This document shows, one piece after another, positions 1 to 64,000 of a DNA stretch of 64,000 nt. Numbering within the stretch: position 1 is the first letter of the stretch; each line of letters opens with the position of its first letter. The position numbers and the translations under genes are program-made. The notes below the pieces were generated by a model. That model was not told where the DNA came from. It made no database searches and saw nothing but the letters and a program-made list of their open reading frames with translations. The stretch lies in the sequence record MH494197.1. One strand, 5' to 3'.

Positions 1-1371
1 AAAACAAGTCGCTGATAACACTGATTTATCATATGGCGGTGATTATTATGGATCAGATAGTACCGTTGTGTCAAGCATTGGTGATTTAATTTTGGTGACA
101 CTCCAAGTCGTAACTATAATCTCGAAGCTATCACCTTAAGTTGCGTCTACCAAGTCCAAGAAGCAACTCCTGACTTGAAAATCCCGATTGTTCTTCAACT
201 TTAACACTATGGACATCACAATTCATTATAACACAATGATTCAGCGTTTGGGAAGAAAAATTATGCCGTGACGTAATCGAACTTCCTAACTTACGTGATT
301 TTGATGTACTTGGTAAAGATTCTGGTTTAAACCGCTTCTATGTAGTACAAGATGGGTTTAGAACGTCAGAAGGTTACTCAGTTACATGGCAACATCACAT
401 TTACAAACTCCGTGTTAAACCTCTTACTGATTCACCAGAGTACTCTGACCTTCTAGGTAACAATAACTACCCTGATGACCCAGATGATCCAAACAACGGC
501 AATGGTAATACTGATGATGGCTCTTCAGAGAACAGCAGCTATGGTAATGAAATGGATATTATGAACCGTATCATTATGCAAGCTGATGATGAAGTACCAT
601 ACATTCATTTTACTAACGAACACTTGTTCGATGACAGACCAGATACTGTTGATTTGTCTAAGTATATGCTAAATGGATACGAATTACCAGAGGAACCAGC
701 AAATAAAATGTATTTCCTCAAGAAAACTTACCCAGTACTGAAAGAACTATCTAATGATACATGGATTTCTGTAGAAGTCAAGCGTGGAACAATCTTTCCT
801 CGCAAACCGATGGATGGTGACTTCTTCTTTAAAGAAAACGAGGCTGATGTCACTGGCTTCTCATTGTATCAATACGATAAATCTGCCAAAAGTGGCTAAA
901 TTGTGATGTTGAGTATACTACAGAAAGCACACCACCACAAGGGGTTGATGATTTTTATATTGAATACAAAGAACCACACATTTATCAGTACTTAAATGGT
1001 AAATGGGGAGAACCAGAAGTAACTTACGTTAATGACCCATTCACTTCTAATAGTGTTTATGGAAATATCGATTCACAACAAGATTATCGTCCTAAGATTC
1101 CTCCAGCACGAGGTACAGTTCCTGAAGGTAACATGTTCCCAAGTGATGCAGTTGATGGTGATTACTACTATCGTACCGATTATACACCAGTAACCCTATG
1201 GGAATACAGTGCGTCCAAGAATTCTTGGGTGATTTTCGATTACGGTGGTAGAAAACCGTGGAAGGTGCAGATCTTGCTCTAACAGAATTTGTTAATAGCC
1301 CGAACCGTGTGCCATTACATGATGCAGTTAAACCTAATACAGTGTATCGTATACATAAGGATTCAGAATGA
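1..1371 (+). CDS. Neck/head-completion protein (T4 gp14-like), 5'-truncated by the window edge, frameshifted
   Basis: Reading continues through several indels into ORF 552..899 and on to a TGA overlapping the ATG at 1368. It lies directly upstream of a gp15-like gene; the family call rests on context and recalled similarity. Confidence 0.5.
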
Positions 1372-2690
1372 AAATAGATTATTATTATGATGGTCAATTT
1401 CGTCGAGTACTGAAACATCTTATCAGAGTGTTTGGTGAATTTCAAGTACAAAATGGTGTTGATGCTGACGGAAAACCAAAATATAAGAAAGTTCCTTGCC
1501 GCTATGCAGATATTTCACGTATGGCAGCAGCAATTATTAATGGTAACAGTGAGAACGTGCTTCCAACAGCACCAATCATGACCATTAGTGTAAACCAACT
1601 TAAACTAGATCGCAAGTCAGTTCGTTCAAACGCAAATGAAACATTGGTTATGGGGACTAACAAGTCCCGAATTAACGAATATACTAAAGACTTAGATAAA
1701 CAGTATAAAGTAACTCGTCATAACCCAGTACCTTGGACATTTACTTTTGATGTTAATATTTGGGTTACACAAACACAAACCAAAATGGAACTATTTGAGC
1801 AAATTTCAACATTGTTTGCTCCTAGTATTCAATTACAACTCTCCGAGAACCCATTGGATTGGACATCATTGAGTGATGTGGAGTTAATTGACTGTCAATT
1901 TACTACTCGTGGTTTCCCACAAGGAACCGATAGTGATTTGGATATAATGATTTTGACATTTGAAACAACAATTTGGTTCTCTTTGCCAGCTATTGTTGAG
2001 AAACCAAAACTTATTCAACAAATTACCACCAATATTAAAGGTGCTCGTGATGAACTTGATTTTGAAATTGGTAATTACTCGGATATCATTACTGATGTAT
2101 TCACACCAAAGAACTTATGTATTAAAGTTGATGAAATAACAAACTCTGAACTTAATATTCCAGATACTTACCAACTCACTCTTGTTAGTCAATCACTATC
2201 AGAAACATCACCAAATGGTGGAATTTATTCATGGGAAAAATACCTTAAGTACTTGGACCCAGAATATGAAGACAAGACGGTTGGTATCAAATTCCAACAA
2301 GCTATAGAAGAGGACAACCCACTAAAAGGACACATCTCTTCATTTGGTGAAGGTGCTGAATCTAACAAGATTGTAGTTCAGCTTGATAATAGTAATTATA
2401 CTGTTGATTATACAATACATGGATTCATTAGTAAAAGCTCTTTGTTATATAACGCACTGCCTGAACAATATTATGTAAATAATAGCATACATAACATCAT
2501 TTACAAAGAGACTGAAATCCCAGCGAACTATTTGTTTAAAATTACCAATGATGGAGCAGAACTTATTGAGCCATCACTAGTACACAACTATGTTTATAAT
2601 ATGGAAGATAGTGGATATTATAGATATAATGACAAATTCAAATGGCATAAGAGTATTATGTCAGTATATCGTCAGGGTATTGGAAAATAA
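1368..2690 (+). CDS. Tail terminator / sheath stabilizer (T4 gp15-like)
   Basis: Intact 440-aa ORF. The N-terminus YYYDGQFRRVLKHLIRVFGEFQV...KVPCRY and HNPVPWTFTFDVNIW resemble gp15 family motifs. Confidence 0.7.
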   Translation: MKIDYYYDGQFRRVLKHLIRVFGEFQVQNGVDADGKPKYKKVPCRYADISRMAAAIINGNSENVLPTAPIMTISVNQLKLDRKSVRSNANETLVMGTNKSRINEYTKDLDKQYKVTRHNPVPWTFTFDVNIWVTQTQTKMELFEQISTLFAPSIQLQLSENPLDWTSLSDVELIDCQFTTRGFPQGTDSDLDIMILTFETTIWFSLPAIVEKPKLIQQITTNIKGARDELDFEIGNYSDIITDVFTPKNLCIKVDEITNSELNIPDTYQLTLVSQSLSETSPNGGIYSWEKYLKYLDPEYEDKTVGIKFQQAIEEDNPLKGHISSFGEGAESNKIVVQLDNSNYTVDYTIHGFISKSSLLYNALPEQYYVNNSIHNIIYKETEIPANYLFKITNDGAELIEPSLVHNYVYNMEDSGYYRYNDKFKWHKSIMSVYRQGIGK

Positions 2691-2719
2691 CTTTCACTGA
2701 CAAATAAGGAGGTGTTGTT

Positions 2720-3181
2720 ATGAATGAAGCAGTAGGTGCTATATTTTTATCTAAAAGTACTGGACATATGATGTTAAACTTGAGATCAGAAAGAAGTACG
2801 TATTCTAACAACTGGGCATTTGTTGGTGGGAAGCTTGAGTATAATGAAACTCCGTTACAGGGTCTTATGCGTGAGATTAAAGAAGAGCTAGGTGATTCTA
2901 TTCCAACGATAATAGATATTATACCATTTGATGTATTCTGTACGAAGAATGGTAAATTTAAATATTATTCATTTGTCATTGTAGTTGAAAATGAATTCGT
3001 ACCTACTTTAAATCATGAGAGTTCGGGTTATGCATGGGTTAAGATTGGCTCATGGCCCAAACCATTACATCCGTGCAAAAACACATTACTTAACACAAAT
3101 TTAATGAAGGATTTCTATTCATTGTGGGAAAGTATACGACAAGGTACACAGTTTGTCAACAGCTTACCATATCGATATTAA
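2720..3181 (+). CDS. Nudix hydrolase
   Basis: Nudix box GGKLEYNETPLQGLMREIKEELG; RBS AAGGAGG upstream. Confidence 0.9.
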   Translation: MNEAVGAIFLSKSTGHMMLNLRSERSTYSNNWAFVGGKLEYNETPLQGLMREIKEELGDSIPTIIDIIPFDVFCTKNGKFKYYSFVIVVENEFVPTLNHESSGYAWVKIGSWPKPLHPCKNTLLNTNLMKDFYSLWESIRQGTQFVNSLPYRY

Positions 3182-3182
3182 T

Positions 3183-3210
3183 AAAAAGGAGCCAATGGCT
3201 CCTTTTTCTT
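3183..3210. terminator. Bidirectional intrinsic terminator between convergent genes
   Basis: aaaaaggagcc-aat-ggctcctttttctt. Confidence 0.85.
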
Positions 3211-4303
3211 TATACCCCAATTAGTGGGATACCTGTTATGTTAAGTAGAACAGATGCTTGAAGCTTAACTGACTCACCTGCCGAAAGGTTGTTTACTATA
3301 CCATCGACGCGGAACCCTAAGTTTTTATTAGAGTTGAGAGAGTTAATCACCCAGTTTTCGTAATCCGCTTTTGTAATACCATTCGGATTTGGGAGAGTTG
3401 GATCAACATCATTAATTACCATAGAAACATCCCAATTCGGGCGACTACTTGTAATTACATCCTTGATTGATTCTAGTTGTGTAATGCGACGTGGATCTGG
3501 AATCTGACTTGCACCAATTGAACCGAAAAATGTACCTTGGTTATCAACATAGAACTGACCTTTAATGAAAAATGTTTTGAATTATACGGAAGAGAAACAA
3601 TTTCACCTGATGAATCACTAACTTCACGAATCATAATTTTCAATTCATAAAAATAGTTACTACCAAATTCAAACACACCAGTACCATTTGTGAATGTTGT
3701 CCAGTTATTTGAATCAACCTGTGAAGTACCACCCATATTGAAGTACGCTAATGGCTTAGTACTGTTACTTTGTGTAAATTCAATATATTTCTTACCTGTA
3801 TCATAGTTGATATCAAGTAGTGTTGAGTACTCTTTATTTTCTGGACGAGATGTTTGAATTTCACGCCATTCTTTATTTTTCATTAGGACACGAAGGAATC
3901 ACCATTACTGGTAAGAACCATACGACCCATAATACTATTTTCACCATCTGGTACTGTGTTGAAAATTGAAATCATTGGGATAGATGCCCAGTCAGCTTCA
4001 GATGCAGTATCTACTGGCTGACGAGCATTATCAACTAATGCAAGAAGTAGTTCGCCAGTGTTGCCAGTATTTCTGTACCAAATCTGACCATTAACGTTAC
4101 CACGAGGTGCAGTAGCTCCACTGAAGTTCTCAACCAAGTGGAGGAAGTTTTCGTTCCATGCTTGACCGTAACCAACTTTATTTCGACCTGCAAAGTTTAA
4201 CGGTACTGGGTTACTACCGTTGGTTTGGTCCTAATATTACGTTATTTGGAATGGTAGCATAAACGCTACCATTACTTCTATAAATTGTATAACTTACACT
4301 CAT
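3210..4303 (-). CDS. Baseplate/virion structural protein (frameshifted)
   Basis: Fragments 3883..4137, 3473..3883 and 3210..3422 join into one gene starting at ATG 4303; includes GYGQAWNENFLHLVENFSG...GQIWY typical of jumbo-phage baseplate proteins. Confidence 0.5.
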
Positions 4304-4315
4304 ATCATCACCTTA

Positions 4316-4922
4316 TTATTGTAGTTGGACACGAACTGTGTATTTGATTTGCAAAACACGGTTAGCACTTTTCTCAACTGGGTGAAAAATAATATGGGTA
4401 AGTGGAATACCGCTATCACCATTTGTATATAAACCCAATTCGTCAAATACATATGTCCCATCCATGCTAGTACCAGAGCTAACACCTTGGTCAGATGGCT
4501 CACCTAAACCTAATGTGCAAATACAGACGATATCAGTGTAAGCTTGGCACGGAATGTGAACAGTTGTAATGTTGTTATATTGTGAATCAATACCAGCAGA
4601 GATACGTGGGTTGATTTTTTCAGATAAGTCTGAGAATATAGACCACCGAAAGAAGTAACGCGTGGTTTCTTGTATGTGATACGACCAGTACTCAAAACTA
4701 CTGTTCCACCATTACCAAAACGCATCTCACTAATAGATCCAATAGGAATACCAGTACTATCTTGATTATAAGCCAACGCATTAGCAATAGCAGTACTCAT
4801 ATTTTCAGGGTGAATTGCGTTTGATTTATCCAAAACGATTTTTGGTTAGATGGATCAGTAACGTCAGTAATTAGTACATGACCCTTAACAAATAGTTTTG
4901 GTTGTTCTGTTTCTAATTTCAT
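4316..4922 (-). CDS. Conserved virion protein (frameshifted)
   Basis: ORF 4510..4833 (NAIHPENMSTAIA...RFGNGGT) extended through indels; located in a structural operon. Confidence 0.45.
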
Positions 4923-4966
4923 TTCTAATCCTTAGTAGTTAATTAAAATTTGTTCTAACTTACCAG

Positions 4967-5428
4967 CTAAACTTTTTGTACATCAGATGGATACTTGCTA
5001 ATGTAATCACGGTCAATACCGACTTTCAGATAGGTAAAGTTTCCGGTTAAGGTTTCAGCGAATGTACCAGTTGTACCTTGTTCTCTAATAAGGTCACCGC
5101 CATTTGGGTTAAGAATGACATTATCAGTAAATTCAAGATAGAAGTTGCAGCTTTCGGTAAATTTAATTGGGAACCAATCATCGTCAGATGGATTACTTGC
5201 CAGTGTAGCGAGTACGTAAATTCTACCAATGAAGTTACGTAGGGTAAAGGATATTGTATGTAATCCTGTAGTACTACCATAATAGCCGCCACTAGCTAAT
5301 GGTAATGTTTGTTCGTTCCAATGATAATCTAAGTTAGCAGGATACCAGCTATCTGATTCAGGAAATTCTTGCCATGAACCATCTTTAGTTTTTCTTTTGA
5401 AGAGGAAGTCTTTTGATCTTAATGCCAT
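4967..5428 (-). CDS. Hypothetical structural protein
   Basis: Intact 153-aa ORF downstream of a TAAATA late-promoter motif. Confidence 0.55.
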   Translation of the reverse strand: MALRSKDFLFKRKTKDGSWQEFPESDSWYPANLDYHWNEQTLPLASGGYYGSTTGLHTISFTLRNFIGRIYVLATLASNPSDDDWFPIKFTESCNFYLEFTDNVILNPNGGDLIREQGTTGTFAETLTGNFTYLKVGIDRDYISKYPSDVQKV

Positions 5429-5459
5429 TGTTAAGCCCTTTTAGTAGTGAACTTTCATT

Positions 5460-5501
5460 TATTTATTAATGGCAACGAAATGTATTTTGTACTGATAAAT
5501 A
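5460..5501. promoter_or_regulatory. Divergent pair of T4-like late promoter motifs (TAAATA)
   Basis: TATTTA at 5460-5465 (minus) and TAAATA at 5496-5501 (plus) between divergent structural genes. The same hexamer precedes other structural genes (9766, 14840, 21501 plus; 36476, 37249, 40297, 42152 minus). Confidence 0.6.
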
Positions 5502-5537
5502 TTGGTATATGACATTAACTCATACAAGGGAAATATT

Positions 5538-6663
5538 ATGACAATTTCATTCAACAATGGGTCAGGTGGTTCATGTAATAATTCTGGCATCAAAAGTTTA
5601 GTTATTAACGCTGCTGGACATTTAATTGTAACCTATTCCGACAATACAATCCAAGACCTAGGTCTAGTGGTTGGACAAAATGGTGCTAACGGTAGAAACT
5701 TTTATCCAAATGAGATAGGTTTTGAAGTTCCTAATGAACTCTTCCGTGTTGGTGAAGAACTAGGGTGGTGTTATCTTAGTCTTGCAAACGGCACTAGTAC
5801 TTTATATTTTAAATCAAACGATGCCCAAGAAACAATTAGTACTTGGAACCGTGTAGAGTTTGGTAAAGGTGATACTGGTGAAGCTGGTAAACCATTCCAC
5901 ATTGACAGTTCTGGTACGGCGTTTCCAACAACTGGTCTTTTCGATAATTACACATTCTATAATACTGAAGATGGTAAATTATATTTCTATCAAAGCGTAA
6001 CTGCAACATGGAGTGATGGTATTCCTTTCCGTGGTGAACAAGGTCTACGTGGTCGTTTCCATATTGATAGTACTGGTAGTCAATTCCCAAGCATTGATAA
6101 TCTACCACAAGATTATTGCTTCTATAACACGACAGATGGTAATTTGTATTATGTCGATATCGTAACTACATCATCAACCCCAACTAAAGAGTGGAGTGCT
6201 GGTATCTTATTCCGTGGAAAAGACGGTGAAGAAGGTAAGCAAGGTGAACAAGGTATTCAGGGTGAACGGTAAAGATACAGTTGTTATCATCAACACTATT
6301 GATCATTCATGGACTAACGCATTGTTAGTTATTGGTACATGCCCTGCTGGATACCTAGTAACTAATATCGAAGTTGATATTAACCAAGCATATGATGAAC
6401 CAGTAAATGAAATGTTTGTACGTTTCGGTGGTGAAGCACAAGAAGATATTGGTGGTACTGTAATTGCACCTGTTGATTATTTCGATATCAACCGCAAAAT
6501 GCGTTACATTGTTAACGAAACCAACCACGAAGTATCAAGTAAAGATGAAATCATTTCTTGTGTATTCAATGATTCCGTAAACAACAGTTCATTTGGTGAA
6601 ATGAAGATCGTTTGTACTTTATCATGGCAAGCACCTATTCAGCCTATTCAAGATAACATTTAA
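5538..6663 (+). CDS. Tail fibre-associated protein with short collagen-like G-X-Y stretch (frameshifted near 6270)
   Basis: ORFs 5502..6272 and 6196..6663 overlap in different frames; GKDGEEGKQGEQGIQGE; repeated FHIDSxGxxFP...FYNTxDGxLY units. Confidence 0.55.
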
Positions 6664-6676
6664 AGAGGGTTGATAA

Positions 6677-8805
6677 ATGGCAGTTTTTCCAATTTAGAAG
6701 GGACCATGATGCCAACATTCAAGTTGGGTAAACGTGGTGCTTCTATTAATTTTGTAAACGATTCTGTCGCAATCAAAGACTTTTAGGCGAAACGTTCCTA
6801 CCTGTTAAGGTGGGAACTCCTAATGACGATGATTCCGCAGTAAACGTTAGGTATCTTGAAGATAACCCAAATGCTTTATTTGGCGTACTTCCACCAACAA
6901 ATGACATTGGTAAAAATAACAACACTTATTTTCAAGTTGATTCTGAGGGTATTGTTGATATCTTTGCAAAACAAATGATGTTTGGGTAAAATCATTATAC
7001 ATTAATAAAAATGTCCTTTCCAGTGTTAACGGTGCTGATTATATCGGACTTATTACTGGAGGAACACTTCAACAGGCACAGTTTTACATAACACCAGAAG
7101 AGTTTGGTGCAAAGGTGATGGCATCACTGATGACACGGCGGCGTTAACGCATGTGCAGTTTATGCTAAAGAACACAAAATCCAAATTCAAGCTGGTGGTA
7201 ATTATCGTATCAGAACTGCTGTTTATTTGAATGATATTCAATGGTTTGGTGGTACAATCACTGGTAACGGTGGCACAATGGTATCGGTACTGAATAGTAC
7301 AATCCAACAAGCAACATTAACAGGATGTTATTTAAAATTCTTTGGTGGTAATGGTAAATTTTATTTTAATAAATTTATTAATATTACAAGTACTGCTGCA
7401 TTTCTAATGCAAGGTATGACTGAATCAGGTACTATCGACTTCTGCTTTAATGAAATGACACAATGTAAGTACGGTGTTCTTCAGCAAGGCACTGGTGAAA
7501 AATGACAGTTGGGCGTTATTCATACAACCACATCCATGATATATATGGTGATGCAATTGAATTGAACGTAGTCAACTCACATTACCCAGACGGATTTGTA
7601 ATAGAAGGCAACTTGATTGAAAACGTAGATGGTACAAATGCACCAATTCCTCTTTCAAACTGGGGTATTGGTATCGGTGTTGCAGGTTCTGGTCCTTATG
7701 ATGTGAATGCTGATGATTCACAATATGTAAAAAATTCGTTATAAAAATAACCGCTTGTACAATGTCCGTCAATGTATTCACGTTGAGTTGGGTAAAGACT
7801 TTAAAATTCTCAATAATGAAGTTTATCCATCAACGTTGGTATCAATTGGTACTGGTTTGACAACCGCTGGTGTAATTACTTATGGTTCTGTTGATTTTAT
7901 TATTGATGGCCTATCTGGGCATCTATTAAATGATCCATCAGTAACTAACCGTATGGTTTCTATTAACTGGGGCGTAACATCTGGTAAATTTGCTGGTCCT
8001 CCACGAAACTTTAAATTATGTAATCTCCACATTCCTGAGTCGTCTATTATTGTGTATACTTCAGGCTCTGATAATTGGCTAAATACTACTGAACTTTCTA
8101 ATATTACATGTAGTAGAATTCAATGGCGTGGATTGCCGTCATCTTCCAAGTTTAATAATATCAGTACTAAAGAACTTGATGTTATTGGACAACACCTTGC
8201 AACTGAAGGTGAAGGAGGGGCTTATATACTCGCTCTAAATATACATATACCAACTGGACTAATTGTGTTGTTCAAGATGATTGTAACATATCAAAATATA
8301 GTTTCTCAAGAATGTATGTTGACCGTATTGACCAATCATCTAATAACTTTAAAGTAACCACTGCAATTGATGGAACGGGTCATCGTGGACCTGTAGTAAT
8401 ACCTGTAGTTGAACAGTATTACGTGCCTTATGATGTTTTTCCGGTGGGAGATATTTCCCAACAGGAACAATTATCCATAAACAATCAGGTGGAAAATTTA
8501 TTGTTACAGTAGGTGGTTCTTTCTTTGGTCGATATGACACAATTAGACAAACAGTTGCAGGACAAACTTATATCGAAGCATTGGGTGTATCATGGGGTGA
8601 TAATCAATATGCTAAAGCTGCTGGAACCGAAATCCTAATCACAGGAGCAGGGGAAAATGGCGAAGATTTAAAACATATATCACTAGAGCAGTTTATGTTG
8701 TTAATAATGCGTATCGTATCGATATTGCCGATCCGATTGTTACTGCTACCGCAGCAGGGCATTATTGAAAGCTGCTCAACCAATAACATATATCACCCTA
8801 TCTTA
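6677..8805 (+). CDS. Tailspike with WcaM-like (colanic acid-degrading) beta-helix domain, frameshifted
   Basis: Fragments contain NWGIGIGVAGSGPY...QYVKNF and RQCIHVELGKDF, matching recalled WcaM motifs (NWGIGIGLAG; RQLxHVENGKHF). An FGAKGDGITDDTAA pectate-lyase-type start lies near 7100-7140. Confidence 0.7.
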
Positions 8806-8820
8806 AAGGAGATTATAAAA

Positions 8821-9715
8821 ATGGCAGTTTTTCTAATTTAGAAGGAACCATGAAGAAGACCTTCATACTTGGTAAAAATGGTGCACAAATTGCCACTAAT
8901 GGTAATGTTGTTCAAATCCAGAACTACACGGGTACACAACTTCTTCCTGTTTCAGCAGGTGACCCAACCGCAAATACACACTTGGTTACATTGGGTTATT
9001 TGAATACACATAGCGGTGGTGGTGGCGGTTCCGGTATTTTACGTGGAACTATTGCACCATCTGAATCAATCGGTGTAGATGGTGACGCTTACTTCTTAGT
9101 TGACAGTACTAATATTATTCAGATCTATATTAAAGACCTTGGTGTTTGGAAGCCTCTCCAAAGCACAACTCCGTACTGATAGTTCTTACGTTACTACTGA
9201 AATCGTTCCTGTATCGGCATTTACATTAGTTCACGGAACAACAGATCAATATACTTATTCTTTACCTGAATCAGTACATGGTCGTGGTCCAGATATTATG
9301 GTTCAGCTACAGGGTGATCCCGGTAACATCCCACTTGACACTGTATTCCAAACTAACGTCACTGTGAGTGGTATTGGTGACATTACGATTGATGTTATTG
9401 GTCAAATTACTGAATACACAAGTGTCAAAGTCAACATCATAGGAGCAACAACAATGACAGTACCTTATAGTAAATTAATTAATATAGCAGATTGGGTAGC
9501 ATCTGGTGATGATTACACCATTACTGTTCCAGCGTCAGAACATAACCAAACACCTGACAATTTGTATATTTCTATATATTCAAATAAAACACCGCAGTAC
9601 AGCAGCATCACCATTTGAACTGGTAATAACCGAAACTCAAATTGATGCAAGTGGTAATGTTACATTCACTTCTGATGAAGCGTTTAGTGGTAAAATAGTA
9701 ATTTCCGGTAAATAA
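8821..9715 (+). CDS. Tail fibre/spike-associated protein sharing the N-terminal anchor of the tailspike (frameshifted)
   Basis: After one-base correction both 6677 and 8821 start MAVFSNLEGTMxxTFxLGKxGA; fragments 8850..9179, 9100..9618, 9506..9715. Confidence 0.6.
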
Positions 9716-9716
9716 A

Positions 9717-9754
9717 AAATAATCCAGACTGCGTTCCATCGAGTCTGGATTTTT
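9717..9754 (+). terminator. Intrinsic terminator
   Basis: aatccagact-cgttccatc-gagtctggattttt stem followed by a T-run. Confidence 0.7.
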
Positions 9755-9829
9755 ATATTAATAACTAAATATATGTATATTAACAAGGTCAAATGTATTT
9801 TATGCTTTTGCCTATTTGGAGGGAACTAA

Positions 9830-12800
9830 ATGTACTCGATTAAAACAGATCTAGATATAACTGGTGGTGCAACGGTTGGTAAAGATCTTCTTGTGAAAGG
9901 CGATGCAGTATTCAATAAAAATCTAACAGTTAATGGAACTGTAACTTTTGCTGACGCTGTATTCACTGCAATTGAAGCAGGAACTGTAGACATTTCATCT
10001 ACACTAGATGTTGCTGGTAAAGCATCATTGAATGGTGGAATTGAAGTTCATGGTAATTCCGTAATTGGTAATTTGCCTGTTGGCTCTGATACTGCAACGA
10101 TTAATTCTAATGCACAATTCCAAAGCCCAGTATCAATGGCAGGTAACCTAACACAAACCGCTGGCACTGCTGTACTAAAAGATACCCAAGTGGCATCAAT
10201 GGATGTTCTTGGAACTTCTTCATTTAAAGGTAATATTACTGCTGAAACTGGCACTACCGCAGCATTTGACAAAATAACTGCAACTGATGCAACATTCACA
10301 AACACTGCAACTACTGATATCACATCAACTGGAACTGCAAACTTTAAAGATGTGAATATTTCCGGTACACTAGGTGGAACATTTAGTCTATCTGATGTTA
10401 ATGCAACAACTCTAACTGTTTCTGGTTTAACCAGTCTACAAGGTGGTGTTACATTAGGTTCCAACATTACTGGTGTGAATAGTAGTGCAAACTTCCGTGA
10501 TATTAAAATTGGTTCCAATGCTGCAAACACTAACTACCGTTTGAGCTTTAACTATTCTGCTCCAAGTCTTCGCCCAACTGTAATTCTACAGAACGAAATC
10601 CAATCAGAATTGATGTCTCCAGCTACCCTAAGTGTATTGAAAACTGCATCTTTTGGTGATTCGTCATTATCCACTTTTGGTATTACTGGTAATGGTCTAA
10701 ACAAACTAGATTACCTAACAGTATCTGGTAACTCTGTTCAAGATCCAGCAACTCCACTATTACAAGTAACTTCAGGTAAAACTAAAGTTCATGATTTCGA
10801 AGTAACAGGAACTGCAACTATTCCTAACATTGAAAGTACTGGTACTGCTAATTTTAATAACATCAACGTATCTGGTACACTCGGCGGTACTTTCAGTCTT
10901 GATGATATTGAAGCAAACACTCTAACTGTTTCTGGATTAACTAGCCTTGTTGGTGGTGTAACTTTAGGTGCTGATATTTCCGGTGCTAATAGTACTGCTA
11001 ATTTTAAAGCAGTAAGTTTAGGACAAAACGCAGCCGATGCTAACGTTAAGTATGGTTTTGCTTATTCTGCCCGGTGCTCGTCCAACTGTAATTCTACAAA
11101 ATGAAATTCAGTCTGAACTAGTATCTCCAGCAGTACTAAATGTACAAAAACTGCTACCTTTGGTGATGCATCTCTTGCAACCTATGGTATCACAGGTAAC
11201 GGTCTAAACAAACTAGATTATCTATCTATTACTGGTAATGGTACACAAAGTCCAGCTACCCCACAACTACAAGTAGCTGGTAAATCAGTACTAAATGATG
11301 TTGAATTCACTGGTACTGTAACTGGTCTAACTGTTGATGTGAGTGGACAAGATCTAACTCCTAAATCAGTAGTTGCTGCTGAAGCAATCAAAGGTCAAAC
11401 CCTTGAATCAGTTGGTCAAACCACCGTAGGAACTAACCTACAAGTTGGTGGAACTGCTAATGTTGTTGGTGCACTAACTGGTACTGCTGCTACCTTCACT
11501 GGTGATGTAAGTGCTGCTAAAGGTACTTTCAGTGGTGATGTTAGCGTTACTGGTCAAACTGTAACTGTACGTGATTTAGTAGTAACTGGTACAACTACTG
11601 GTGTAACTGCCCAAGCTGATGTTGATGGTCTTGATATCGCCCCAAATAAAGTTGATGTTACAACAACACTATCTGTTGCTGGGGACACTACTTTAGCTGG
11701 CCTAACTGCTAGTTCAGTAACCAGTACTGGTGATGTTACTGGTGCGTCTGTATCTGGTAATACAGTAACTGCGGCTGGTGCACTATCTGGTGGTTCTCTT
11801 GCAGTAACTGGTGCTGGTTCTATGGCTTCACTAACTGTTCCAAGTATTACTGGTGACACTACTTTTGCTAATAACGTAACTATTACTGGAACACTAACTC
11901 CGAGTAGTATAGATTTAAGCACTACTGATGTAAGTGCTGCTTCTTTAACAACTACTGGTAACGTAACTGTTGGTGGTTCTCTTGCAGTAACTGGTGCTAT
12001 TGATTTGTCTGCTGCTGATGTAGTAACAAAATCAGTTAGTGCAACTAACCCAAGTACATTTGGTGTAATTAATGCATCTTCTGTTGTCGCAACTGGTGAC
12101 GTTTCAGGTGGCACTCTAACTACTACTGGTGCAGCGAAAGTAGGAACACTAACTAGTACTGGTGTAGTATCTGGTTCGCGTTTGTCTTCTGGTACTGCAA
12201 CAATCTCAACTTCTGTAACAGTTCCAACTTTACAAGCTGAAGCTGCTGGTGCTGGTACACTAAATCTAGCAAGTAATGTTGTCGCGGCAAAGATCTAACT
12301 GTCACTGGTGTATTCAAACCTGAAGGTGGTCTTGACCTAACAACTGTTGATATTACTGCAAACTCACTAACTACTACTGCTGATGTTAATGTTGGTGGAA
12401 ACTTAGTAGTTGATGGTACTTTTGACCTAAGTGCTGCTGATGTGTCTGTGAAATCTCTTGCAAGTGCAGAGACAATTACAAGTGCTGGTGTTATTACCGT
12501 TACCGATTCAACCAATACTAGTTCGTTACCTAAAATTACTTCAACTGATGCAACACTCTTTACAGTAAATGCAGGTACTATTAATGCAACTGGCAACAGT
12601 GTACTACAAAGTGTATCAGCTACTCAAGTAACTGCAACTAGTGCTGAATTGACTGGTGTTGGTCTTGGTCTTCAAGTCGATAATGATGCAAACGTTGGTG
12701 GTGCATTATCTGTTGGTGGAATCGCAACTGTTGGTTCTTTAACAACAACTGCTGCTTCTCTTAATATTGCAAAAATACTGCAATCACTGGTGATTTAGCT

Positions 12801-14759: not shown

Positions 14760-14777
14760 CATTTTAAATTAATAATT

Positions 14778-48409: not shown

Positions 48410-48423
48410 AATTTACCTACCTT

Positions 48424-52747: not shown

Positions 52748-53104
52748 CTAATAATCTAAAATTAGTACAGAATCTATCATTTTTAGCAACGTTCTTACGT
52801 AACGCATCAAAACAGTACTGAAATAGTTATCCAATGGAAAAGAAGTATCAGTGTAATTATAAAAATCCATTACATTTGTCATGTTCACATGTTCAATTAC
52901 CGCACCATTGTGCGTTACAATAAACATTATATCACCATAATTACAATTTGCATCAGTACGGTACAGATATAAATGATCACGTAAATAATCTTTTAATTTA
53001 TGTTCAATACCACTTTGTTCAGTACTTTGAAATACCAAAACTTCACCATAGATTGTATTACCTTCATAATCATTTGGTTCGCGGATAATTGTAAGGTTAT
53101 ACAT
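52748..53104 (-). CDS. Hypothetical protein
   Basis: 118-aa ORF with RBS AAGGAG. Confidence 0.55.
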   Translation of the reverse strand: MYNLTIIREPNDYEGNTIYGEVLVFQSTEQSGIEHKLKDYLRDHLYLYRTDANCNYGDIMFIVTHNGAVIEHVNMTNVMDFYNYTDTSFPLDNYFSTVLMRYVRTLLKMIDSVLILDY

Positions 53105-53112
53105 ATAACTCC

Positions 53113-53403
53113 TTATACCGGAGATACGGTACTCAGCATTAGTAGAGCAGTGTTTTCATCAATTTCATGTTGATTGTCGCACACTAGTGTTTCCAATAGG
53201 TCTGGATTGTAATAATAATGTTCATAATCTGTATCATTTGGAATATGGTGATAGGTGAATACAATGTCAAATACATCATCATCATTTTCACTTTTGAAAC
53301 GCTTTAATTCTTCTACACTTTCAACAAAACCATACTCTTCAAAAGCAGTAGTACCATCAGTAAGTTTCATCCATGCACTTGCGACAATTTTCATAAATTT
53401 CAA
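53113..53403 (-). CDS. Hypothetical protein
   Basis: 96-aa acidic ORF. Confidence 0.55.
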   Translation of the reverse strand: MKFMKIVASAWMKLTDGTTAFEEYGFVESVEELKRFKSENDDDVFDIVFTYHHIPNDTDYEHYYYNPDLLETLVCDNQHEIDENTALLMLSTVSPV

Positions 53404-53462
53404 ATCCTTATTCTTTTGTAATGTTTAGTTTAGAAACGAAATGGTTTTTGCTTCTTCAAATG

Positions 53463-53990
53463 TCATTGAAGTATATACTGGTTCCAATTATCGTCAAGAT
53501 CTGTAAGTACTTTAACTTCCATTACATCTTCAGGTGTGTAGAATTGCCATGTGTTATGATCTGGTTCATAATTAGGGTCTAGTGTGAAAACTGTTCCATT
53601 CTGACCATAAACTTGTCCATCCTCTAATAGCTCACGAAATAAGTCTTCCCCAGTTGTTGGGTCTTCGTATGCATTATAAAAGGAAAACAACATTCTCAAC
53701 ATCAGTTCGGTAGTACCATCGTCTTCATCATATTCAACCAAACGGTCCTGATGAAATACTAGGTCAATAGCACCAATGCGAGGTTTATTATGTGGAGTTT
53801 TGATTTCTTGCTGGGAATTGTAATCCATACGTTCAGTACTGATGAATACACCACTTGGTGTGATTTCAATACCAGATACATTTTCTGGTGAATAATAAGA
53901 GTCACACATATCATCAATATGCATGTGCTCATGATACACTTCCATTTCAGGGTTCTGCATCAACAGTGCTGCTAGGTCTTTTGCTTTCAA
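53463..53990 (-). CDS. Hypothetical protein, paralog of 54762..55340
   Basis: MKAKDLAALLMQNPEMEVYH...ITPSGVF...WQFYTPEDV. Confidence 0.65.
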   Translation of the reverse strand: MKAKDLAALLMQNPEMEVYHEHMHIDDMCDSYYSPENVSGIEITPSGVFISTERMDYNSQQEIKTPHNKPRIGAIDLVFHQDRLVEYDEDDGTTELMLRMLFSFYNAYEDPTTGEDLFRELLEDGQVYGQNGTVFTLDPNYEPDHNTWQFYTPEDVMEVKVLTDLDDNWNQYILQ

Positions 53991-54579
53991 TCTTCAATCT
54001 CCATAGAGTCATCACTTTCGTAATCATCACTAGTGTACTTAGTTTTACCTCAATACCATTCTCATGAAGGTATGTGATAAAGCCATTACCATGAACGAAT
54101 TGATTATAATATGTATTTTCTTCTACATGTGAGTCATAATCATCTTCGTAATATGTGGGCATTGTAACATCATGACCAGCACTTTGCAAGTACTGGAACA
54201 ATTCTTTCAGAACTACTTCGATATCACCTTCTTCTGTGCCATAACAATATGCAGGTTCACCGTGAGTGAATTTGAATCCTTTACAGGAAACTGTATAAAT
54301 GTCACTCATGTTCATACCACAATCATCACATTCATGTATAGAACAATGCTGGTGGAATTTAATCTTTTGATTTGCATTTAGAAAATCCTGTAAAGATGTA
54401 GTAGACATTGGACTATCAGCACCATCATACCACAGTGATGTATATGGCTGAACTGAACTAATATCAATACAGAATCCTTCACGCTCACATTTTCGAGCGA
54501 ATTCTTCAGTAGTTAGTTTGTTACCAAAAGAAATCTCAAATTCATAACTAGACATATCAATATCAGTACTGTAAATCAA
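53990..54579 (-). CDS. Hypothetical Cys-containing protein
   Basis: ORF 53947..54579 with CSIHECDDCG. Confidence 0.5.
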
Positions 54580-54761
54580 TGTACCATCATATGTAATATG
54601 GAGTTTAGAATCTGCGTCAAAAGACGATCTGAAATAGCTTCATAATCATCTTCAGGAACTGCTTCAATAAGACGGGCCATTAGTCCAGATGTTACGCGTA
54701 ATCACTCATTTTTAATCCTTTTTTTATTTTTCAAGTTTATCAATAATAGAAGGTGATACTT

Positions 54762-55340
54762 TTACATTGAATTCAGAATCAGGAAAATCTTTAGAAAATG
54801 AATCAATTTGTTCTTGTGAAAGTTCTTCTTTTGTGGAAATAACATTTTAACTAAATTTTTACCACATTCAATTGCTTCATCATACGACATAGTTTCCCAT
54901 GTTCCATGCCAAGTACTAGGTTCATATTCTGTCAGTACAGAAATGAAATCAATATCATCGGGTGTATACCAAACAGCATTTTGATTCCCTGATGGTGCTG
55001 ATTGATTTTTACCTAATAAAACAATTGGCTTTTCATAAGGAATGTTAAATATCAACCCAGATTCTAAGTTAAGAACAGTTTGAATAGATGAACCCTCCAA
55101 TTTTGGAGTAATAGTACCATCCTTAAAGAAAATTTGTACATGACCCAAGAGTGGGGTTTCATATGGTGTAAGTACATTTTCAGAAACTGATGTGGGTTTT
55201 GCCGTTGTGAAAATACCAGATGGGGTGACCATTAATTTATTATCAAAATTCTGATAATGCAATTCACTATCCACATCATAATGATAAATGTCTAGATTTG
55301 GTTGAGATAGTAGTAATTTTGCTAAATCATGAGATTTCAT
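54762..55340 (-). CDS. Hypothetical protein, paralog of 53463..53990
   Basis: MKSHDLAKLLLSQPNLDIYH...VTPSGIF...WYTPDDI. Confidence 0.65.
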   Translation of the reverse strand: MKSHDLAKLLLSQPNLDIYHYDVDSELHYQNFDNKLMVTPSGIFTTAKPTSVSENVLTPYETPLLGHVQIFFKDGTITPKLEGSSIQTVLNLESGLIFNIPYEKPIVLLGKNQSAPSGNQNAVWYTPDDIDFISVLTEYEPSTWHGTWETMSYDEAIECGKNLVKMLFPQKKNFHKNKLIHFLKIFLILNSM

Positions 55341-55419
55341 TTTATTTCTCCAAAGAAAAGGAGAGTCACAATGACTCTCCATATATTTTATTGTAAAACT
55401 TTGAGTTTGTAAAGCATTC

Positions 55420-55826
55420 CTTCACAAAAACTCATAATGTCTTCTAGCGTGTTAGTACTACCATAGTCTTCAGCCTCTTCTAGCATAGCATGAATGGCTT
55501 TACATTGACTAACATATTCTTCAAGAATTGGTACACAATCCTCGATAGGGTAAAACGATAACTGTTACCAGTACCTACCTGCAATGCCCGCGAGTGTTCA
55601 TAATACCCTCTACAAATGCATCAACGTACTCAGGTAACTCTTTGTATAGTTCATCCAATTGTAGGTGCTTCGTGTAGAAATGGCTCTGTAAATGCCAGTT
55701 GTGAGCAGCAGCACTTAAAAATAAACTATTCTCAATAAATGTAAGTAGTACTTCATCATAAGAACTATCTTCTTCAGTATCTCCGATAAAGTCCATTACA
55801 TGTCGTAAATCATTAATATTTTCCAT
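55420..55826 (-). CDS. Ferritin/Dps-like four-helix protein (DUF5856-like), frameshifted
   Basis: AAAHNWHLQSHFYTKHLQLDELYKELPEYVDAFVEG resembles the Dps helix A/B pattern; 3' end approximate. Confidence 0.55.
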
Positions 55827-56002
55827 AAATCTCTCCTTAGAGTTATTCTATGGTATTTAGTTAATAATAAAGGTAACTTCAGGATTCATTTCTGAAACTG
55901 CATTTCTCTTACTTCTATTCCATAGTACTCTATTGTTATATAATGAAGAATCACAAATTATAAGTAAGCAATTCCTTAATCTACTTACAGTACTTTGATT
56001 AC

Positions 56003-56284
56003 TTAAATCAGTTTCTGTAACAAAAATACATTATCAGGAACTTCTACAGGAATTGATTTATCAAAGAAGAAAACTACAATAGGTCTGTTTGTATGAACTA
56101 AATTAATAAAGTCTAAAATACTGTTATAAAATTCAGTTCCTTTGTTTAAACTTAATGGATCTTTGATTCTCTTCAAATAGGTCTGAACCAAATTATGATC
56201 GCTTTTGATTTGATACTCAAAATATTCTTTGAATAACATTTGTGTTAATTCAGATGTATTGGATATTTTCGTTGTGTTACTCAT
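56003..56284 (-). CDS. Hypothetical protein
   Basis: 93-aa ORF. Confidence 0.5.
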   Translation of the reverse strand: MSNTTKISNTSELTQMLFKEYFEYQIKSDHNLVQTYLKRIKDPLSLNKGTEFYNSILDFINLVHTNRPIVVFFFDKSIPVEVPDNVFLLQKLI

Positions 56285-56414
56285 TCACTTCGTTCTCTCG
56301 TAACTCAAGAAGTCACTACGTTTACTTCGTAAACTAGTTCCTTCTGAAAATGATAATGTACTTTAAAAGCTTGACGGATTTGTTGAGGACTATTTCATCC
56401 CCGAGGAAGAAGGT

Positions 56415-56922
56415 AATAAAAAGAGACAATTAAGTCTCTCTGACGATGATGGCATCGGATATTATCGAATTGCGAATTTCTCAAATTTTGGACGGATCTT
56501 TCCTGTACCAAAATTTAGAGAAAAGCGGGTTGCTCGGTTTCTCTCTATCGCAGTCATATGCAACGGTCGCTGGTCTTTTCATCAACAGCACTCAGTACTA
56601 AACTCTATTCGATCAAAGTAGTACCTGTTCTCAAATTTTGGACGCAACTTTCTTGTAAAATCGCGTCCACAATCCTGAACTCCTTAGCAAATTCGTAAGG
56701 TGCGAACCTTATACATCTATCTAGGAACTCTCTGTGTGCTTGGAGTTCTTTATACAGCCGTGTCGCCGTGATTCGTGGTCTTATCTCGTGTTTGTTTGAT
56801 TGCCAGTACTCTAACAGGTTTCTTTTGCTGTTCGCTACAACGGTAAAGCTCATCTATCCTTTACATTTTCAAGAGAAGTAGGTTCTCATTATCCATTTTT
56901 CAATGTCCGTTGTCATTTTACA
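56415..56922 (-). ncRNA. Candidate large structured non-coding RNA (family unknown)
   Basis: About 41% GC versus under 30% in the downstream flank; at least six hairpins; 17-nt direct repeat; extended -10 TGaTATAAT upstream and a hairpin plus U-tract terminator downstream. Confidence 0.5.
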
Positions 56923-56928
56923 ATATAC

Positions 56929-56956
56929 ATTATATCACTAGGATGTATTATGTCCC
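56929..56956 (-). promoter_or_regulatory. sigma70-like promoter with extended -10
   Basis: Minus strand GGGACA-N16-TATAAT with TG at -15/-14. Confidence 0.55.
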
Positions 56957-57123
56957 GTTACATGTATACCTTTTTCAAATCCTTGGAACAACGGTCAAAA
57001 TTGTGTTGATGAATTCGACATCCTCTTTGATATTGGAGTCTATAGCATCATTCTCGTTTCTTGTTGTGTTCCTGTATTTGTGTTCAGGGTGATTGTATAC
57101 CACCTTGACTACATTATTTAGGT

Positions 57124-57369
57124 CTACAAAAATGACGATTTTTGCGTATAGGAAGCCTGAAGCTTGATGAGTTTACCATCGTTTTGTAGATTAGTCTTGT
57201 GAATTAGTTCTTCAATACCATCTAAATGGCTATAGCTATCCTGTTCTTTGACGAATGTAACAGTTACCAGTACTGACTTCTCATCTCCAAAGTCAGAGAT
57301 ATTTTTAACAGCACTGATGATTTCTAAGTTTGAAAAATCTAATTCTTTTAGCATTACAAATATTTCCAC
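57124..57369 (-). CDS. Hypothetical protein
   Basis: 81-aa ORF. Confidence 0.45.
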   Translation of the reverse strand: MEIFVMLKELDFSNLEIISAVKNISDFGDEKSVLVTVTFVKEQDSYSHLDGIEELIHKTNLQNDGKLIKLQASYTQKSSFL

Positions 57370-57710
57370 AAAGTTCGATAAGTGATAATTTCTTCTCTGG
57401 TAACAGAAACTTCATAGCACTTAACACCATCAGTTTCATTTCTGAATGGTTCTGCTGGTCTATCTTCTGTTAAACCTCGTTCATACGTACAATGATAATA
57501 TTTGTTCGTGTTCATGTCAAGAAAAACTAGATCAAATTCTTCTGTCCATCGTCTATGCCCTTTACTTTCATTACTAATGATTTTGTACTTAACATCGGGA
57601 TTGAATGATTCAGTACTGTCATCCCATGTACCATAGTCAGTATATTCATCATCTTCATCTAACTCTGCCAGATGCCACATTAACTGTGGTAAAAAGATTT
57701 TAGATTTCAT
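57354..57710 (-). CDS. Hypothetical protein
   Basis: 118-aa ORF, RBS GGAG; GHRRW...LVF...YERGLTE motif common in large phages. Confidence 0.6.
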   Translation of the reverse strand: MKSKIFLPQLMWHLAELDEDDEYTDYGTWDDSTESFNPDVKYKIISNESKGHRRWTEEFDLVFLDMNTNKYYHCTYERGLTEDRPAEPFRNETDGVKCYEVSVTREEIITYRTLWKYL

Positions 57711-61970: not shown

Positions 61971-62707
61971 AGGTGTTTGCTCAATTTATATTTTGCTTCT
62001 AAAGAACAGACGATCTTGATCTGTATTGATGATATCTTTAAGTGTGAAACTTTTTGATATAATTTTAAAGATAATTTCATGCCAAATTAAAGTACTGTTT
62101 TGTTTTCCAACTGGGCCAAAAACATATTCATTCCTCATTAGTATAAATCAGTAATGTCTTTGTATGCATTAATCTGTTTTTGTTGTAATGAAAGTTCATT
62201 GAGTTTAGTTACCATTTTATCTACACCAACACGTATATAGAAAATAATAAATGAATCTAACTTGCCTAGAGTAATTCTTGAACTGTAAGTTGAAAGTTTT
62301 CTTGCATAAACATAAATTTCTTCTTCACGGTAAACGTTTCTCAATCAGCAAGTTTTCCACACCATTCGGCTCATAATCAATTTCGAACTCTACGCCTATC
62401 ACAGTATCTTGAATGATATCAGTATATGAACCACCGAAAAATACTCTCTTGGTTTGGCTCTCCAACGAGGACTAAATGGGTCAGATGCGTATTCTTTAAA
62501 AATTTGTAAAAGGACATTTTACTGAGCATATATTTCATCTCAATTAGTGCTTTGCGGTCATCATCAGTTTTAAACTCTGCTTTGAGCGATGGACTTTTAC
62601 ACGCTTAACTAAATTGTTGTACATCTTTAATGTACGTTGGTCTTTCATTTCTTGGATTTTGTGACGCTTTGGTGGTAGTAAAGATTTGACCATAATTTCC
62701 TCCTGTA

Positions 62708-62735
62708 TTTTCTAGCATTATACACATAAAGAAAA
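62708..62735 (-). promoter_or_regulatory. sigma70-like early promoter overlapping a terminator hairpin
   Basis: TTGACG-N16-TATAAT with TGTG just upstream of the -10; hairpin aagcccgtc-aata-gacgagctt at about 62724-62746. Confidence 0.65.
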
Positions 62736-62753
62736 GCCCGTCAATAGACGAGC

Positions 62754-64000
62754 TTAAAATTTTAATGCCAACGTGTACCAGAGCTTGAAGGAACACCAGA
62801 ACTTGCAGGGATAAGAACCACGCTTGGTTGTACTAGGTCTGTATGTCAAGAATCGTGTTACCTTTTCCGTATCAATTGACGTGATACTCGTACTTCCAGT
62901 AACAATATCACCAACGTATACGTTTGTCAATGTCTCATCAAGAAGAGTTGTACTGATAACGTATGCCGCTTTTCTTGTGTTACGGTTCATTTGAATGTAA
63001 AGATAAAAAAGTACTGTTAGCTGGGTTAGTTTTAATAGACTTAATTCTATGGTTTGAATCGCTAATCTATCAAACATACCACCAAGGAATACCGGAACTT
63101 CACGGGTGAAGTACACCGTGAAACCTTCAGCAACATCTTGTGAAACTACTACGATTTTATCTTGTACAGTTCCTGAACCATCAATCAACCCATCCATCTG
63201 TGCTGATGTTGTCCCAAAGAGACTAAACACTGCTTTAGTTTGATAATCTGAATCTTGAAGATGATAGTATCCAAATCCAACACGGTATAACTCCGTGCTG
63301 GAATGCATTGCCATTATCTATGTAGCTGGATGACATAAATCGGTTAGATGTAATCAAACCATTCACTGTTTTAGCAATCATCAATTTGAATTGAGCATTA
63401 CCAGTTGTGAAAACTGATGAACTGCATCAACCCCAATATAACCAAATCCAGAATACTTTGCAACAGTTAGACCAGTACAGCGTTTCATATAGGCTTCAGT
63501 TACAATACCTGTTACAGAATTAAGTGTTTCGTATCTAGAACTCACCATAGTCGCAGAACTAATATTGGTTCCTGAAATGGTAACATCAACTTCAGAATAT
63601 ATTGCATAACCTTGGTTATTGCCTAAGTTATGCAGAAACCACCGCAATAGATTTTGAGAAAGAACTATCTGGTACATAATATAAAGCAATTTTACCAGTA
63701 AATGCTCCTACTATTCCAATATTAGCAAGTATTTCTTGTTTTAATGTTTCCAGAACATTATCACCAATTATAAGAACCATCAAATTCTAAAGTATCTGGG
63801 TTAAACAAACCACCACTTGTTTGTATACACCTTCAATGAATGATGTCCCATAGCATTTAACTGAACCGTCGTGTCAATTAATGAAATCATACCTGTATAT
63901 TTGTAGTTGTCGAGGCGAATTCGGTTGGCTTGTGGTGCAAAACCATTAAGTGTTGTATTGTTTTGTACTGAATTGAACTGGAAGGTTGGTTCAGTACCAA
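62754..64000 (-). CDS. 3' part of a large, probably structural protein (frameshifted, starts beyond the window)
   Basis: Fragments 62754..63314 and 63381..63689 are S/T/G/V-rich beta-type sequence. Confidence 0.45.

Follow-up and report, generated by a model that had tools for sequence, protein, structure and literature searches.

The palindromic hexamer AGTACT is found 138 times in the last 64 kb of the genome of Escherichia phage CMSTMSU (positions 322,443-386,442 of MH494197.1; these 64,000 nt, numbered here from 1, are called the window), which amounts to 2.16 sites per kb and to 6.4 times the 21.5 sites predicted from base composition. CMSTMSU, a jumbo myovirus of 386 kb, belongs to the 121Q/PBECO4 group of the genus Asteriusvirus and is related to the Klebsiella phage RaK2. 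The excess goes beyond codon usage, is confined to this palindrome and to one clade of phages, and is accompanied by purifying selection on single sites, by symmetric half-sites and, in relatives, by fixed positions within promoters. Restriction enzymes cut short palindromes, which phages are therefore expected to lose, as this clade does to an extreme degree; a single palindrome at 6-16 times expectation, held by selection even at silent positions, implies a protein that reads the phage DNA. AGTACT is very probably a selected signal at the DNA level. As to its reader, we lean, with rather less than even confidence, towards a putative two-fold symmetric DNA-binding protein encoded by the phage, for which AGTACT would be an operator at strong sites and a genome mark at weak ones. 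We infer the binding of a protein to AGTACT, its phage encoding and what the binding would achieve from the patterns described below.

Excess of one palindrome in a clade of jumbo phages

The first-pass annotation, made from the letters of the window, had estimated 130-135 sites against about 22 expected, an enrichment of about six-fold, to which the exact figures come very close; seven of its nine example coordinates are exact and the other two lie 1-2 nt away (439 instead of 441, and 4792 instead of 4793). The 138 sites, which are strandless, start at the following positions of the window:

AGTACT, part 1: 439, 734, 987, 1406, 2248, 2756, 3758, 3826, 4687, 4753, 4792, 5270, 5796, 5838, 6069, 7389, 8163, 9105, 10835, 10991, 11132, 11287, 11723, 12155, 12960, 12992, 13122, 13287, 13410, 13431, 14721, 15398, 15906, 16740, 16987, 17110, 17170, 17433, 17912, 17941, 18066, 18360, 18503, 18692, 19064
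AGTACT, part 2: 21029, 21156, 22105, 22927, 23016, 23150, 23376, 24080, 24577, 26036, 26389, 27556, 27639, 28386, 29506, 29674, 30133, 30296, 31038, 31183, 32413, 34268, 34326, 34805, 35071, 35622, 35746, 35886, 36253, 36562, 36775, 37321, 37798, 38056, 38155, 38193, 38699, 39222, 40185, 40676, 40756, 40988, 42323, 42441, 42708, 43028, 43303, 44543
AGTACT, part 3: 45093, 45263, 45299, 45518, 45648, 45702, 46460, 46501, 47051, 48303, 49428, 49704, 49800, 49838, 50578, 50702, 51815, 52258, 52814, 53021, 53506, 53835, 54189, 54565, 54912, 55454, 55747, 55924, 55989, 56594, 56805, 57269, 57612, 58097, 58238, 58483, 59447, 60107, 60439, 60514, 60775, 61084, 61432, 62091, 63010

Repeats do not inflate this number, since the 30-nt contexts of all 138 sites are distinct, and the sites are evenly spaced, with 13-20 of them per 8-kb bin and an index of dispersion of 0.74 (p=0.06), slightly more regular than random. 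Markov models of order 1, 2 and 3 predict 22, 38 and 60 sites (z = 28, 17 and 10, respectively). A model of order 4 predicts 122 (z=1.4), so that the loss of the excess under 5-mer control, which the first-pass annotation had named as a point against its own proposal, does formally occur. However, this fit is circular and hence uninformative, because the 5-mers AGTAC (220 copies) and GTACT (238 copies) carry the identical signal, and it is not an independent explanation. The complete word is what is enriched: the neighbours AGTACA and TGTACT, whose equal enrichment would have counted against the first-pass proposal, number 35 and 39, GGTACT, AGTACC and TGTACA number 44, 31 and 26, and every cell of the NGTACN table other than AGTACT stays at or below 3.5x in the window. 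The preferences for A before and T after GTAC are nearly independent, with a slight synergy (121.8 sites expected and 138 observed in the window, 482 and 590 in 121Q). Among the 64 palindromic hexamers of the window AGTACT is an extreme outlier, the runner-up reaching 2.1x, and a general flexibility of TA-centred palindromes was rejected as the cause, TTTAAA, ATTAAT, GTTAAC, CTTAAG and TGTACA not being enriched. As a separate observation, the words CTGGTG, ACTGGT and GGTGGT reach 8-11x over composition between positions 9800 and 23000 of the window, but their z drops to about 5 under codon-usage control; their source is the repetitive tail-fibre genes, rich in Gly and Thr, rather than Chi, which is present in full only three times in the window.

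AGT, ACT and GTA are among the favoured codons, and Ser, Thr and Gly abound in the products of the tail-fibre genes, as would suit an excess that is a by-product of coding. In the 148 open reading frames (ORFs) called greedily in the window (83% coding), AGTACT nonetheless ranks first of all hexamers after synonymous-codon shuffling within genes (z=13.4) and after permutation of whole codons (z=15.4), the runner-up hexamers in both tests being words that overlap it. The excess extends to the frames AGT-ACT (58 observed, 22.6 expected, 2.6x), nAG-TAC-Tnn (21 and 5.9, 3.6x) and nnA-GTA-CTn (33 and 10.0, 3.3x). The Ser-Thr dipeptide is itself overused (155 versus 113 expected; 1.4-1.6x), and 58 of its occurrences are written AGT-ACT where 21 would be expected, a choice 2.7-3.7x above the prediction from codon usage; it seems to be the DNA word that moulds the protein and not the other way round. 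A codon or amino-acid artefact is thus rejected by synonymous shuffling, codon permutation, the per-frame tests and the density in non-coding DNA. The codon-shuffle control proposed in the first pass leaves AGTACT as the top-ranked hexamer, and the early claim that the bias is not purely amino-acid-driven is borne out by those nulls, by the enrichment of all frames and by the synonymous conservation described below. The same annotation was right that the word occurs in three frames and on genes of both strands, but the sites that it placed between genes are mostly an artefact within the window: 26 sites fall outside called ORFs, six of the six checked lie inside intact ORFs of the relative Ecwhy_1, and the 26 are mostly in coding sequence damaged by frameshifts.

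As a side observation on these codons, 121Q (75,464-75,555) encodes a tRNA-Thr(UGU) and a tRNA-Ser whose anticodon, ACU, is unusual and would read AGU; the in-frame AGT-ACT consists of AGT and the Thr codon ACT.

The excess belongs to one clade, the RaK2/121Q-related jumbo phages of Enterobacterales, and not to one genome, as the following AGTACT counts indicate:

121Q, 200 kb: 590 versus 68 expected (8.7x; 4.6-13x per 50 kb)
121Q, non-coding DNA within these 200 kb: 121 versus 6.9 expected
Turkey5, 23 kb: 48 versus 7.6 expected (6.3x)
RaK2 (Klebsiella), 1-50 kb: 119 versus 17 expected (7x)
RaK2, early region: 72 versus 3.7 expected (19x)
GAP32 (Cronobacter), 1-40 kb: 217 versus 13 expected (16x)
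BF (Serratia), 30 kb: 68 versus 10 expected (6.8x)
T4: 6 versus 17 expected (0.35x)
PA5oct (Pseudomonas): 1 versus 10 expected (0.1x)
XacN1 (Xanthomonas): 0 versus 6.3 expected
E. coli K-12, 100-kb sample: 6 versus 23 expected (0.06 per kb; 0.26x)

PA5oct and XacN1 are non-enterobacterial relatives, and T4 and PA5oct lack the excess despite a similar G+C content. The enriched phages carry 2-6 sites per kb against 0.06 per kb in the E. coli K-12 sample, a 35-100-fold contrast. In the open-access literature searched we found no earlier report of AGTACT over-representation in these phages.

The enrichment runs against a marked loss of other palindromes, a contrast with the usual phage depletion that had been pointed out in the first pass and that turns out to be pronounced: GCGC is absent from the window (73 expected), as are 24 of the 64 palindromic hexamers. 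All the AGTACT-enriched phages lack GCGC, which occurs 7.2 times per kb in the E. coli K-12 sample. The words missing from the 200 kb of 121Q are palindromic hexamers, GCGC (162 expected) and type IIS sites, for example GGTCTC, GGCGGA, GAGGAG and CAGCTC; such extreme avoidance of restriction sites is not seen in T4 or PA5oct. RaK2 1-50 kb contains GGTACC 12 times (2.9x), whereas the E. coli phages have none, and the set of purged palindromes therefore differs among these phages. RaK2 DNA is cut by only certain, methylation-tolerant enzymes (PMC3622015), and the missing palindromes may contribute to this resistance.

Conservation and symmetry of individual sites

Window positions 25,000-49,000 were aligned with Ecwhy_1, 121Q and Turkey5, the clades being 80-85% identical to each other. 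AGTACT is conserved about twice as often as frame-matched hexamers (82% versus 42%, p=1e-6; 66% versus 32%; 64% versus 35%), and third codon positions at which the amino acid is unchanged are identical in 92% of cases inside the word and 70% outside it (p=2e-5), a second comparison of synonymous third positions giving 95% and 64% (p=5e-8). A codon-matched test of conservation yields 65 observed versus 47 expected. Purifying selection acts on individual AGTACT sites, synonymous positions included, and the question raised in the first pass, whether synonymous changes among relatives retain the site, is answered by a retention above background. The sites kept at the same aligned position in all three relatives are:

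AGTACT, 19 conserved sites, strandless, from the alignment: 27639, 29506, 29674, 31038, 32413, 34326, 35071, 35622, 36562, 36775, 37798, 38155, 38193, 39222, 42708, 43028, 45263, 45702, 47051

There is also turnover, with 29 lineage-specific sites and 23 that are missing in one lineage. The gains come from many different precursors, some of them 2-3 substitutions distant, and the transition (deamination-type) neighbours AGTATT/AATACT are mildly depleted, at 0.82-0.85x of the null. A drive by very-short-patch (Vsr-type) repair, as for CCWGG in E. coli, was consequently rejected: with donors barely depleted and precursors so diverse it cannot supply the excess, whereas selection can.

The bases that flank the hexamer are mirror images of each other in five phages, in the order C>A>T>>G before it and G>T/A>>C after it, and there is no excess of flank complementarity at individual sites in the coding DNA of those phages. 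Mirrored flanks that are not complementary site by site fit two independent half-sites on duplex DNA, read by a protein with two-fold symmetry, and a hairpin or cruciform function was rejected on the same lack of complementarity in coding DNA. In 121Q, two AGTACT copies build some intergenic terminator stems. In its preferred form the hexamer is neither preceded by G nor followed by C, and the strongest form is TTCAGTACTGAA. The extended forms in the window, both strandless, are:

12-bp palindrome TTCAGTACTGAA, single copy, a form that recurs in the 121Q non-coding cluster: 32410..32421
8-bp palindrome CAGTACTG, 27 copies spanning 733..57618: 733, 11722, 13286, 14720, 17109, 17169, 21028, 22104, 23149, 24079, 24576, 27638, 29505, 30295, 32412, 34325, 35621, 38154, 40755, 46500, 47050, 50577, 52813, 53834, 54564, 57268, 57611

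The idea of an action at the DNA level, put forward in the first pass, is well sustained by the excess in all frames, the conserved synonymous positions and the symmetric flank preference. The methyl mark, the binding code and the recombination hotspot then proposed are candidate functions, of which the hotspot fits poorly: a Chi-like word is asymmetric and biased in orientation, whereas AGTACT is self-complementary and its flanks are mirror-symmetric.

Putative readers of AGTACT

The early-gene regions of 121Q and GAP32 carry AGTACT at two fixed places in sigma-70-type promoters. One copy lies a single base upstream of TATAAT (AGTACT-N-TATAAT), starting 7 nt before it, and the other starts 27-29 nt before TATAAT, abutting or overlapping TTGACA or TTGCAA, so that the two copies are 20-22 bp apart; pairs of AGTACT at this distance are over-represented. 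In the early promoters of 121Q, GAP32, RaK2 and BF the symmetric word keeps a constant spacing to -35 and -10, as an operator of co-regulated promoters would. When 2.9 million viral contigs were scanned for the exact module AGTACTTGAC-N8-12-AGTACT-N1-2-TATAAT, the double-AGTACT module appeared in 17 DNA stretches, from RaK2 (four copies), BF, 121Q and three unrelated uncultivated contig sets, and two control palindromes in the same module frame appeared in 1 and 0 stretches. Moreover, a 2-kb non-coding region of 121Q (135.2-137.2 kb) holds 15 AGTACT copies with the extended consensus (A)TTCAGTACTGAA(T), and GC skew switches sign there although the flanking genes share the same direction, which suggests an origin of replication or a regulatory hub. 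A similar cluster is found in GAP32 at 2.4-4.3 kb. In the same 121Q region, GATGGCTR repeats with 8/16/24-nt spacing form a separate run.

The fixed placement in early promoters and the non-coding clusters, both seen only in the relatives, speak for either a protein operator or an epigenetic mark. According to the reading that we favour, the putative reader would be encoded outside the window, would be two-fold symmetric and would bind AGTACT. At strong sites it would be an operator-binding regulator, both at early sigma-70-type promoters, where copies about 21 bp apart abut -35 and -10, and at the 2-kb cluster of 121Q, with its roughly 15 copies; at these strong sites it could silence early transcription or set its timing, and perhaps have a part in an origin of replication. 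The intragenic copies, 2-3 per kb and the only kind in the window, would be weaker sites that load the same protein genome-wide, giving the unmodified phage DNA a sequence-based "self" mark, since the word is 35-100 times as dense in the phages as in the E. coli K-12 sample.

A broader version, which we regard as doubtful, is that RaK2/121Q-like jumbo phages, with unmodified DNA and nearly all restriction-type palindromes purged, use AGTACT as a sequence-encoded self code, in which a clade-specific reader, either a binder or a methyltransferase plus a reader, would sense this density contrast and would be coupled to early-promoter shut-off and origin function. Such a code would be a counterpart of T4 hydroxymethylcytosine that works without base modification. 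Finding the AGTACT reader could explain how a large phage with unmodified bases tells its genome from that of its host, as well as how early genes are switched off and where replication starts, and the excess itself would offer a simple sequence signature for spotting the clade in metagenomes.

Several points weigh against the favoured reading. The regulatory part rests wholly on relatives, the window having no promoter-type or clustered AGTACT, and 0 of its 31 sigma-70-like matches carry the word at promoter positions. In Pfam scans none of 30 window ORFs showed a DNA-binding or methyltransferase domain (the only matches are a tail-sheath stabiliser, NUDIX, lysozyme, thymidine kinase, HNH and DUF4376), and no cognate binding protein emerged from such scans of these 30 ORFs and of 7 candidate 121Q proteins. 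The double-AGTACT module occurs once each in two unrelated uncultivated contig groups and in one further contig. A methyltransferase as the symmetric reader would fit all of the sequence evidence equally well, and a simple operator logic does not explain the keeping of about a thousand weak intragenic sites per genome, a number extrapolated from the measured densities.

The main rival, less probable in our view than the favoured reading, is an epigenetic mark. A phage methyltransferase would methylate AGTACT or GTAC, and the state of the site, full on virion DNA and half after replication, would be read as Dam-GATC is by SeqA and MutH; it could time early promoters, control the origin and direct repair. 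Type II methyltransferases read symmetric 6-bp words, and the symmetric flanks suit such an enzyme no less than a binder. The copies overlap early-promoter elements and cluster in the non-coding region where GC skew switches, as GATC clusters at oriC and occurs in Dam-regulated promoters, and the pairs 20-22 bp apart are likewise in line with such a mark. The clade does encode a Dam-family N6-adenine enzyme (121Q gp417, Pfam PF05869, and GAP32_068) and a C5-cytosine methyltransferase (121Q gp91, PF00145), all of them outside the window, and 2-3 methyltransferases are reported in the RaK2 and CBB papers (PMC3622015, PMC5259590). However, the search for a GTAC/AGTACT methyltransferase recommended in the first pass identified none: neither AGTACT nor GTAC specificity is assignable to any enzyme, and an assignment to gp417, of the widespread Dam family, or to the C5 enzyme gp91 was dropped, specificity not being inferable from sequence. 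Neither is the Dam-family enzyme confined to the clade, with gp417-type homologues in more than 2000 phage records, counted without regard to AGTACT content. Methylation alone would leave the 6-16-fold enrichment unexplained, and to our knowledge GATC is not over-represented in Dam+ bacteria. The products of deamination are not strongly depleted. The methylcytosine detected in RaK2 by bisulfite lies in CpG context, which AGTACT does not contain (PMC3622015), and ten enzymes, ScaI not among them, gave the predicted cuts on DNA of fEgEco12, a 99% relative of the window (PMC13070987), so that bulk modification is unlikely there. In the open-access literature searched, no ScaI or RsaI digest and no SMRT or nanopore data for these phages were found.

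We consider it improbable that AGTACT, or its core GTAC, is a replication or recombination signal, that is, a start site for primase or a loading, nicking or protection site for recombination-dependent replication, for which density and not position would matter. Two to three sites per kb, slightly more even than random, would suit Okazaki priming, a palindrome serves both strands regardless of fork direction, the phage encodes a T4-type primase, a helicase and UvsX and UvsY homologues, and the AGTACT cluster coincides with the GC-skew switch. On the other hand, the primase sites known to us are of 3-5 nt, and we know of no report that they are over-represented. Selection on density predicts turnover, yet positional conservation is strong, the fixed positions beside -35 and -10 would be left unexplained, and Chi-type signals are asymmetric and strand-oriented, unlike AGTACT.

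Just as improbable, in our view, is a host-side reader, either the host RNA polymerase or an Enterobacterales-wide DNA-binding protein, that the phage would recruit or titrate. The enrichment is found only in relatives that infect Enterobacterales (Escherichia, Klebsiella, Cronobacter and Serratia) and is missing in the Pseudomonas and Xanthomonas relatives, and the recurrence of the promoter module in unrelated viral contigs keeps this idea alive, since the reader could be the host RNA polymerase or a host factor and not a clade-specific phage protein. However, host range and phage lineage are confounded in the sample, so that a clade-specific phage gene fits equally well, and T4, with the same host, is depleted in AGTACT. 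The 12-bp palindromic site of E. coli SlmA, GTGAGTACTCAC, has AGTACT as its core (PMC3020112), but identity with this site was rejected: the phage sites lack the SlmA flanks, with 0-1 copies of GT.AGTACT.AC in each data set, which does not exceed chance, and the rarest base is G at -1 and C at +1. As to the module-bearing contigs themselves, two IMG/VR groups have a GC of about 0.41 and one contig is AT-rich; they have a mild AGTACT excess, 1.6-5.8x with the two copies of the matched promoter counted in; no cultured relatives were found for them, and their PHROGs matches (terminase, endonuclease VII, polynucleotide kinase) are uninformative.

Finally, that the excess has no function and is a by-product of codon or dipeptide usage or of the purging of other palindromes is very improbable, near as the order-4 model comes to the count, given the first rank of AGTACT after both codon randomizations, the similar fold in all frames (2.6-3.6x), the density in 121Q non-coding DNA, the conserved synonymous positions and the phages that lack the excess.

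Comparable systems and the source sequence

The analogies with HIP1 and Dam-GATC drawn in the first pass are reasonable as descriptions. Like HIP1 of cyanobacteria (GCGATCGC), AGTACT is a short palindrome many-fold over-represented genome-wide, above both composition and codon-aware nulls (6.4x; z=13-15; top hexamer), evenly dispersed in all coding frames of the window and present in the non-coding DNA of 121Q, and shared by a clade, being common to four genera of Enterobacterales jumbo phages and absent from T4, PA5oct and XacN1; the reader is debated in both cases. In contrast to HIP1, AGTACT is a 6-mer (an 8-12-mer at the strongest sites) of viral and not cellular genomes, has fixed promoter positions, a cluster at a GC-skew switch and site-by-site conservation, and no methyltransferase could be linked to it. 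With Dam-GATC of Enterobacterales (read by SeqA and MutH) it shares the symmetric dispersed word, the clustering at an origin-like region, the overlap with some promoter elements and the pairs about two helical turns apart; this clustering and overlap are observed in the relatives, the window has no such site, and the 121Q region is a putative origin. Unlike AGTACT, GATC is not over-represented genome-wide, and AGTACT, whose methylation and reader are putative, marks the phage and not the host. The viral nature of AGTACT, its promoter and cluster architecture and its course against an extreme palindrome purge set it apart from both.

The proposed logic is also that of phi29 p6 and SPO1 TF1, genome-coating phage proteins that also silence early promoters: a single phage protein would lie all along the phage DNA, repress early promoters and aid replication. 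Nevertheless, the specificity of the AGTACT reader would come from a defined palindrome, while that of p6 comes from DNA bendability and that of TF1 from hydroxymethyluracil in the DNA. Chi and DNA uptake sequences are likewise short words held dense by selection because a protein machine reads them, but these are asymmetric and strand-oriented. The SlmA site resembles the phage sites in its central AGTACT (PMC3020112), while the latter lack the outer GTG/CAC arms and disfavour exactly the SlmA flanking bases.

The MH494197.1 record is flagged UNVERIFIED_ORG. Compared with the 98%-identical Ecwhy_1, the 24 kb between window positions 25000 and 49000 show 96 deletions of 1-2 bases, 63 of them in homopolymer runs, and such deletions probably extend across the entire window; runs of A6/T6 number 8 in the CMSTMSU sequence and 29-44 in relatives. 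These deletions are likely sequencing errors that break up genes, and because of them many window genes look split, among them those for the tail sheath, thymidylate synthase, the CCA enzyme, thymidine kinase and the tail fibres labelled "FliK". A poor assembly was rejected as the source of the AGTACT excess, since independent genomes from other laboratories are equally enriched.

The main genes of the window are:

about 1-23 kb, + strand: tail-sheath stabiliser and tail-fibre genes
minus strand: thymidylate synthase, ATPase, structural proteins, tail tube and sheath, and CCA-adding enzyme
minus strand, further: lysozyme, thymidine kinase and numerous small genes without assigned function
57961-58365, - strand: small ORF with an HNH endonuclease domain, among small genes without annotation

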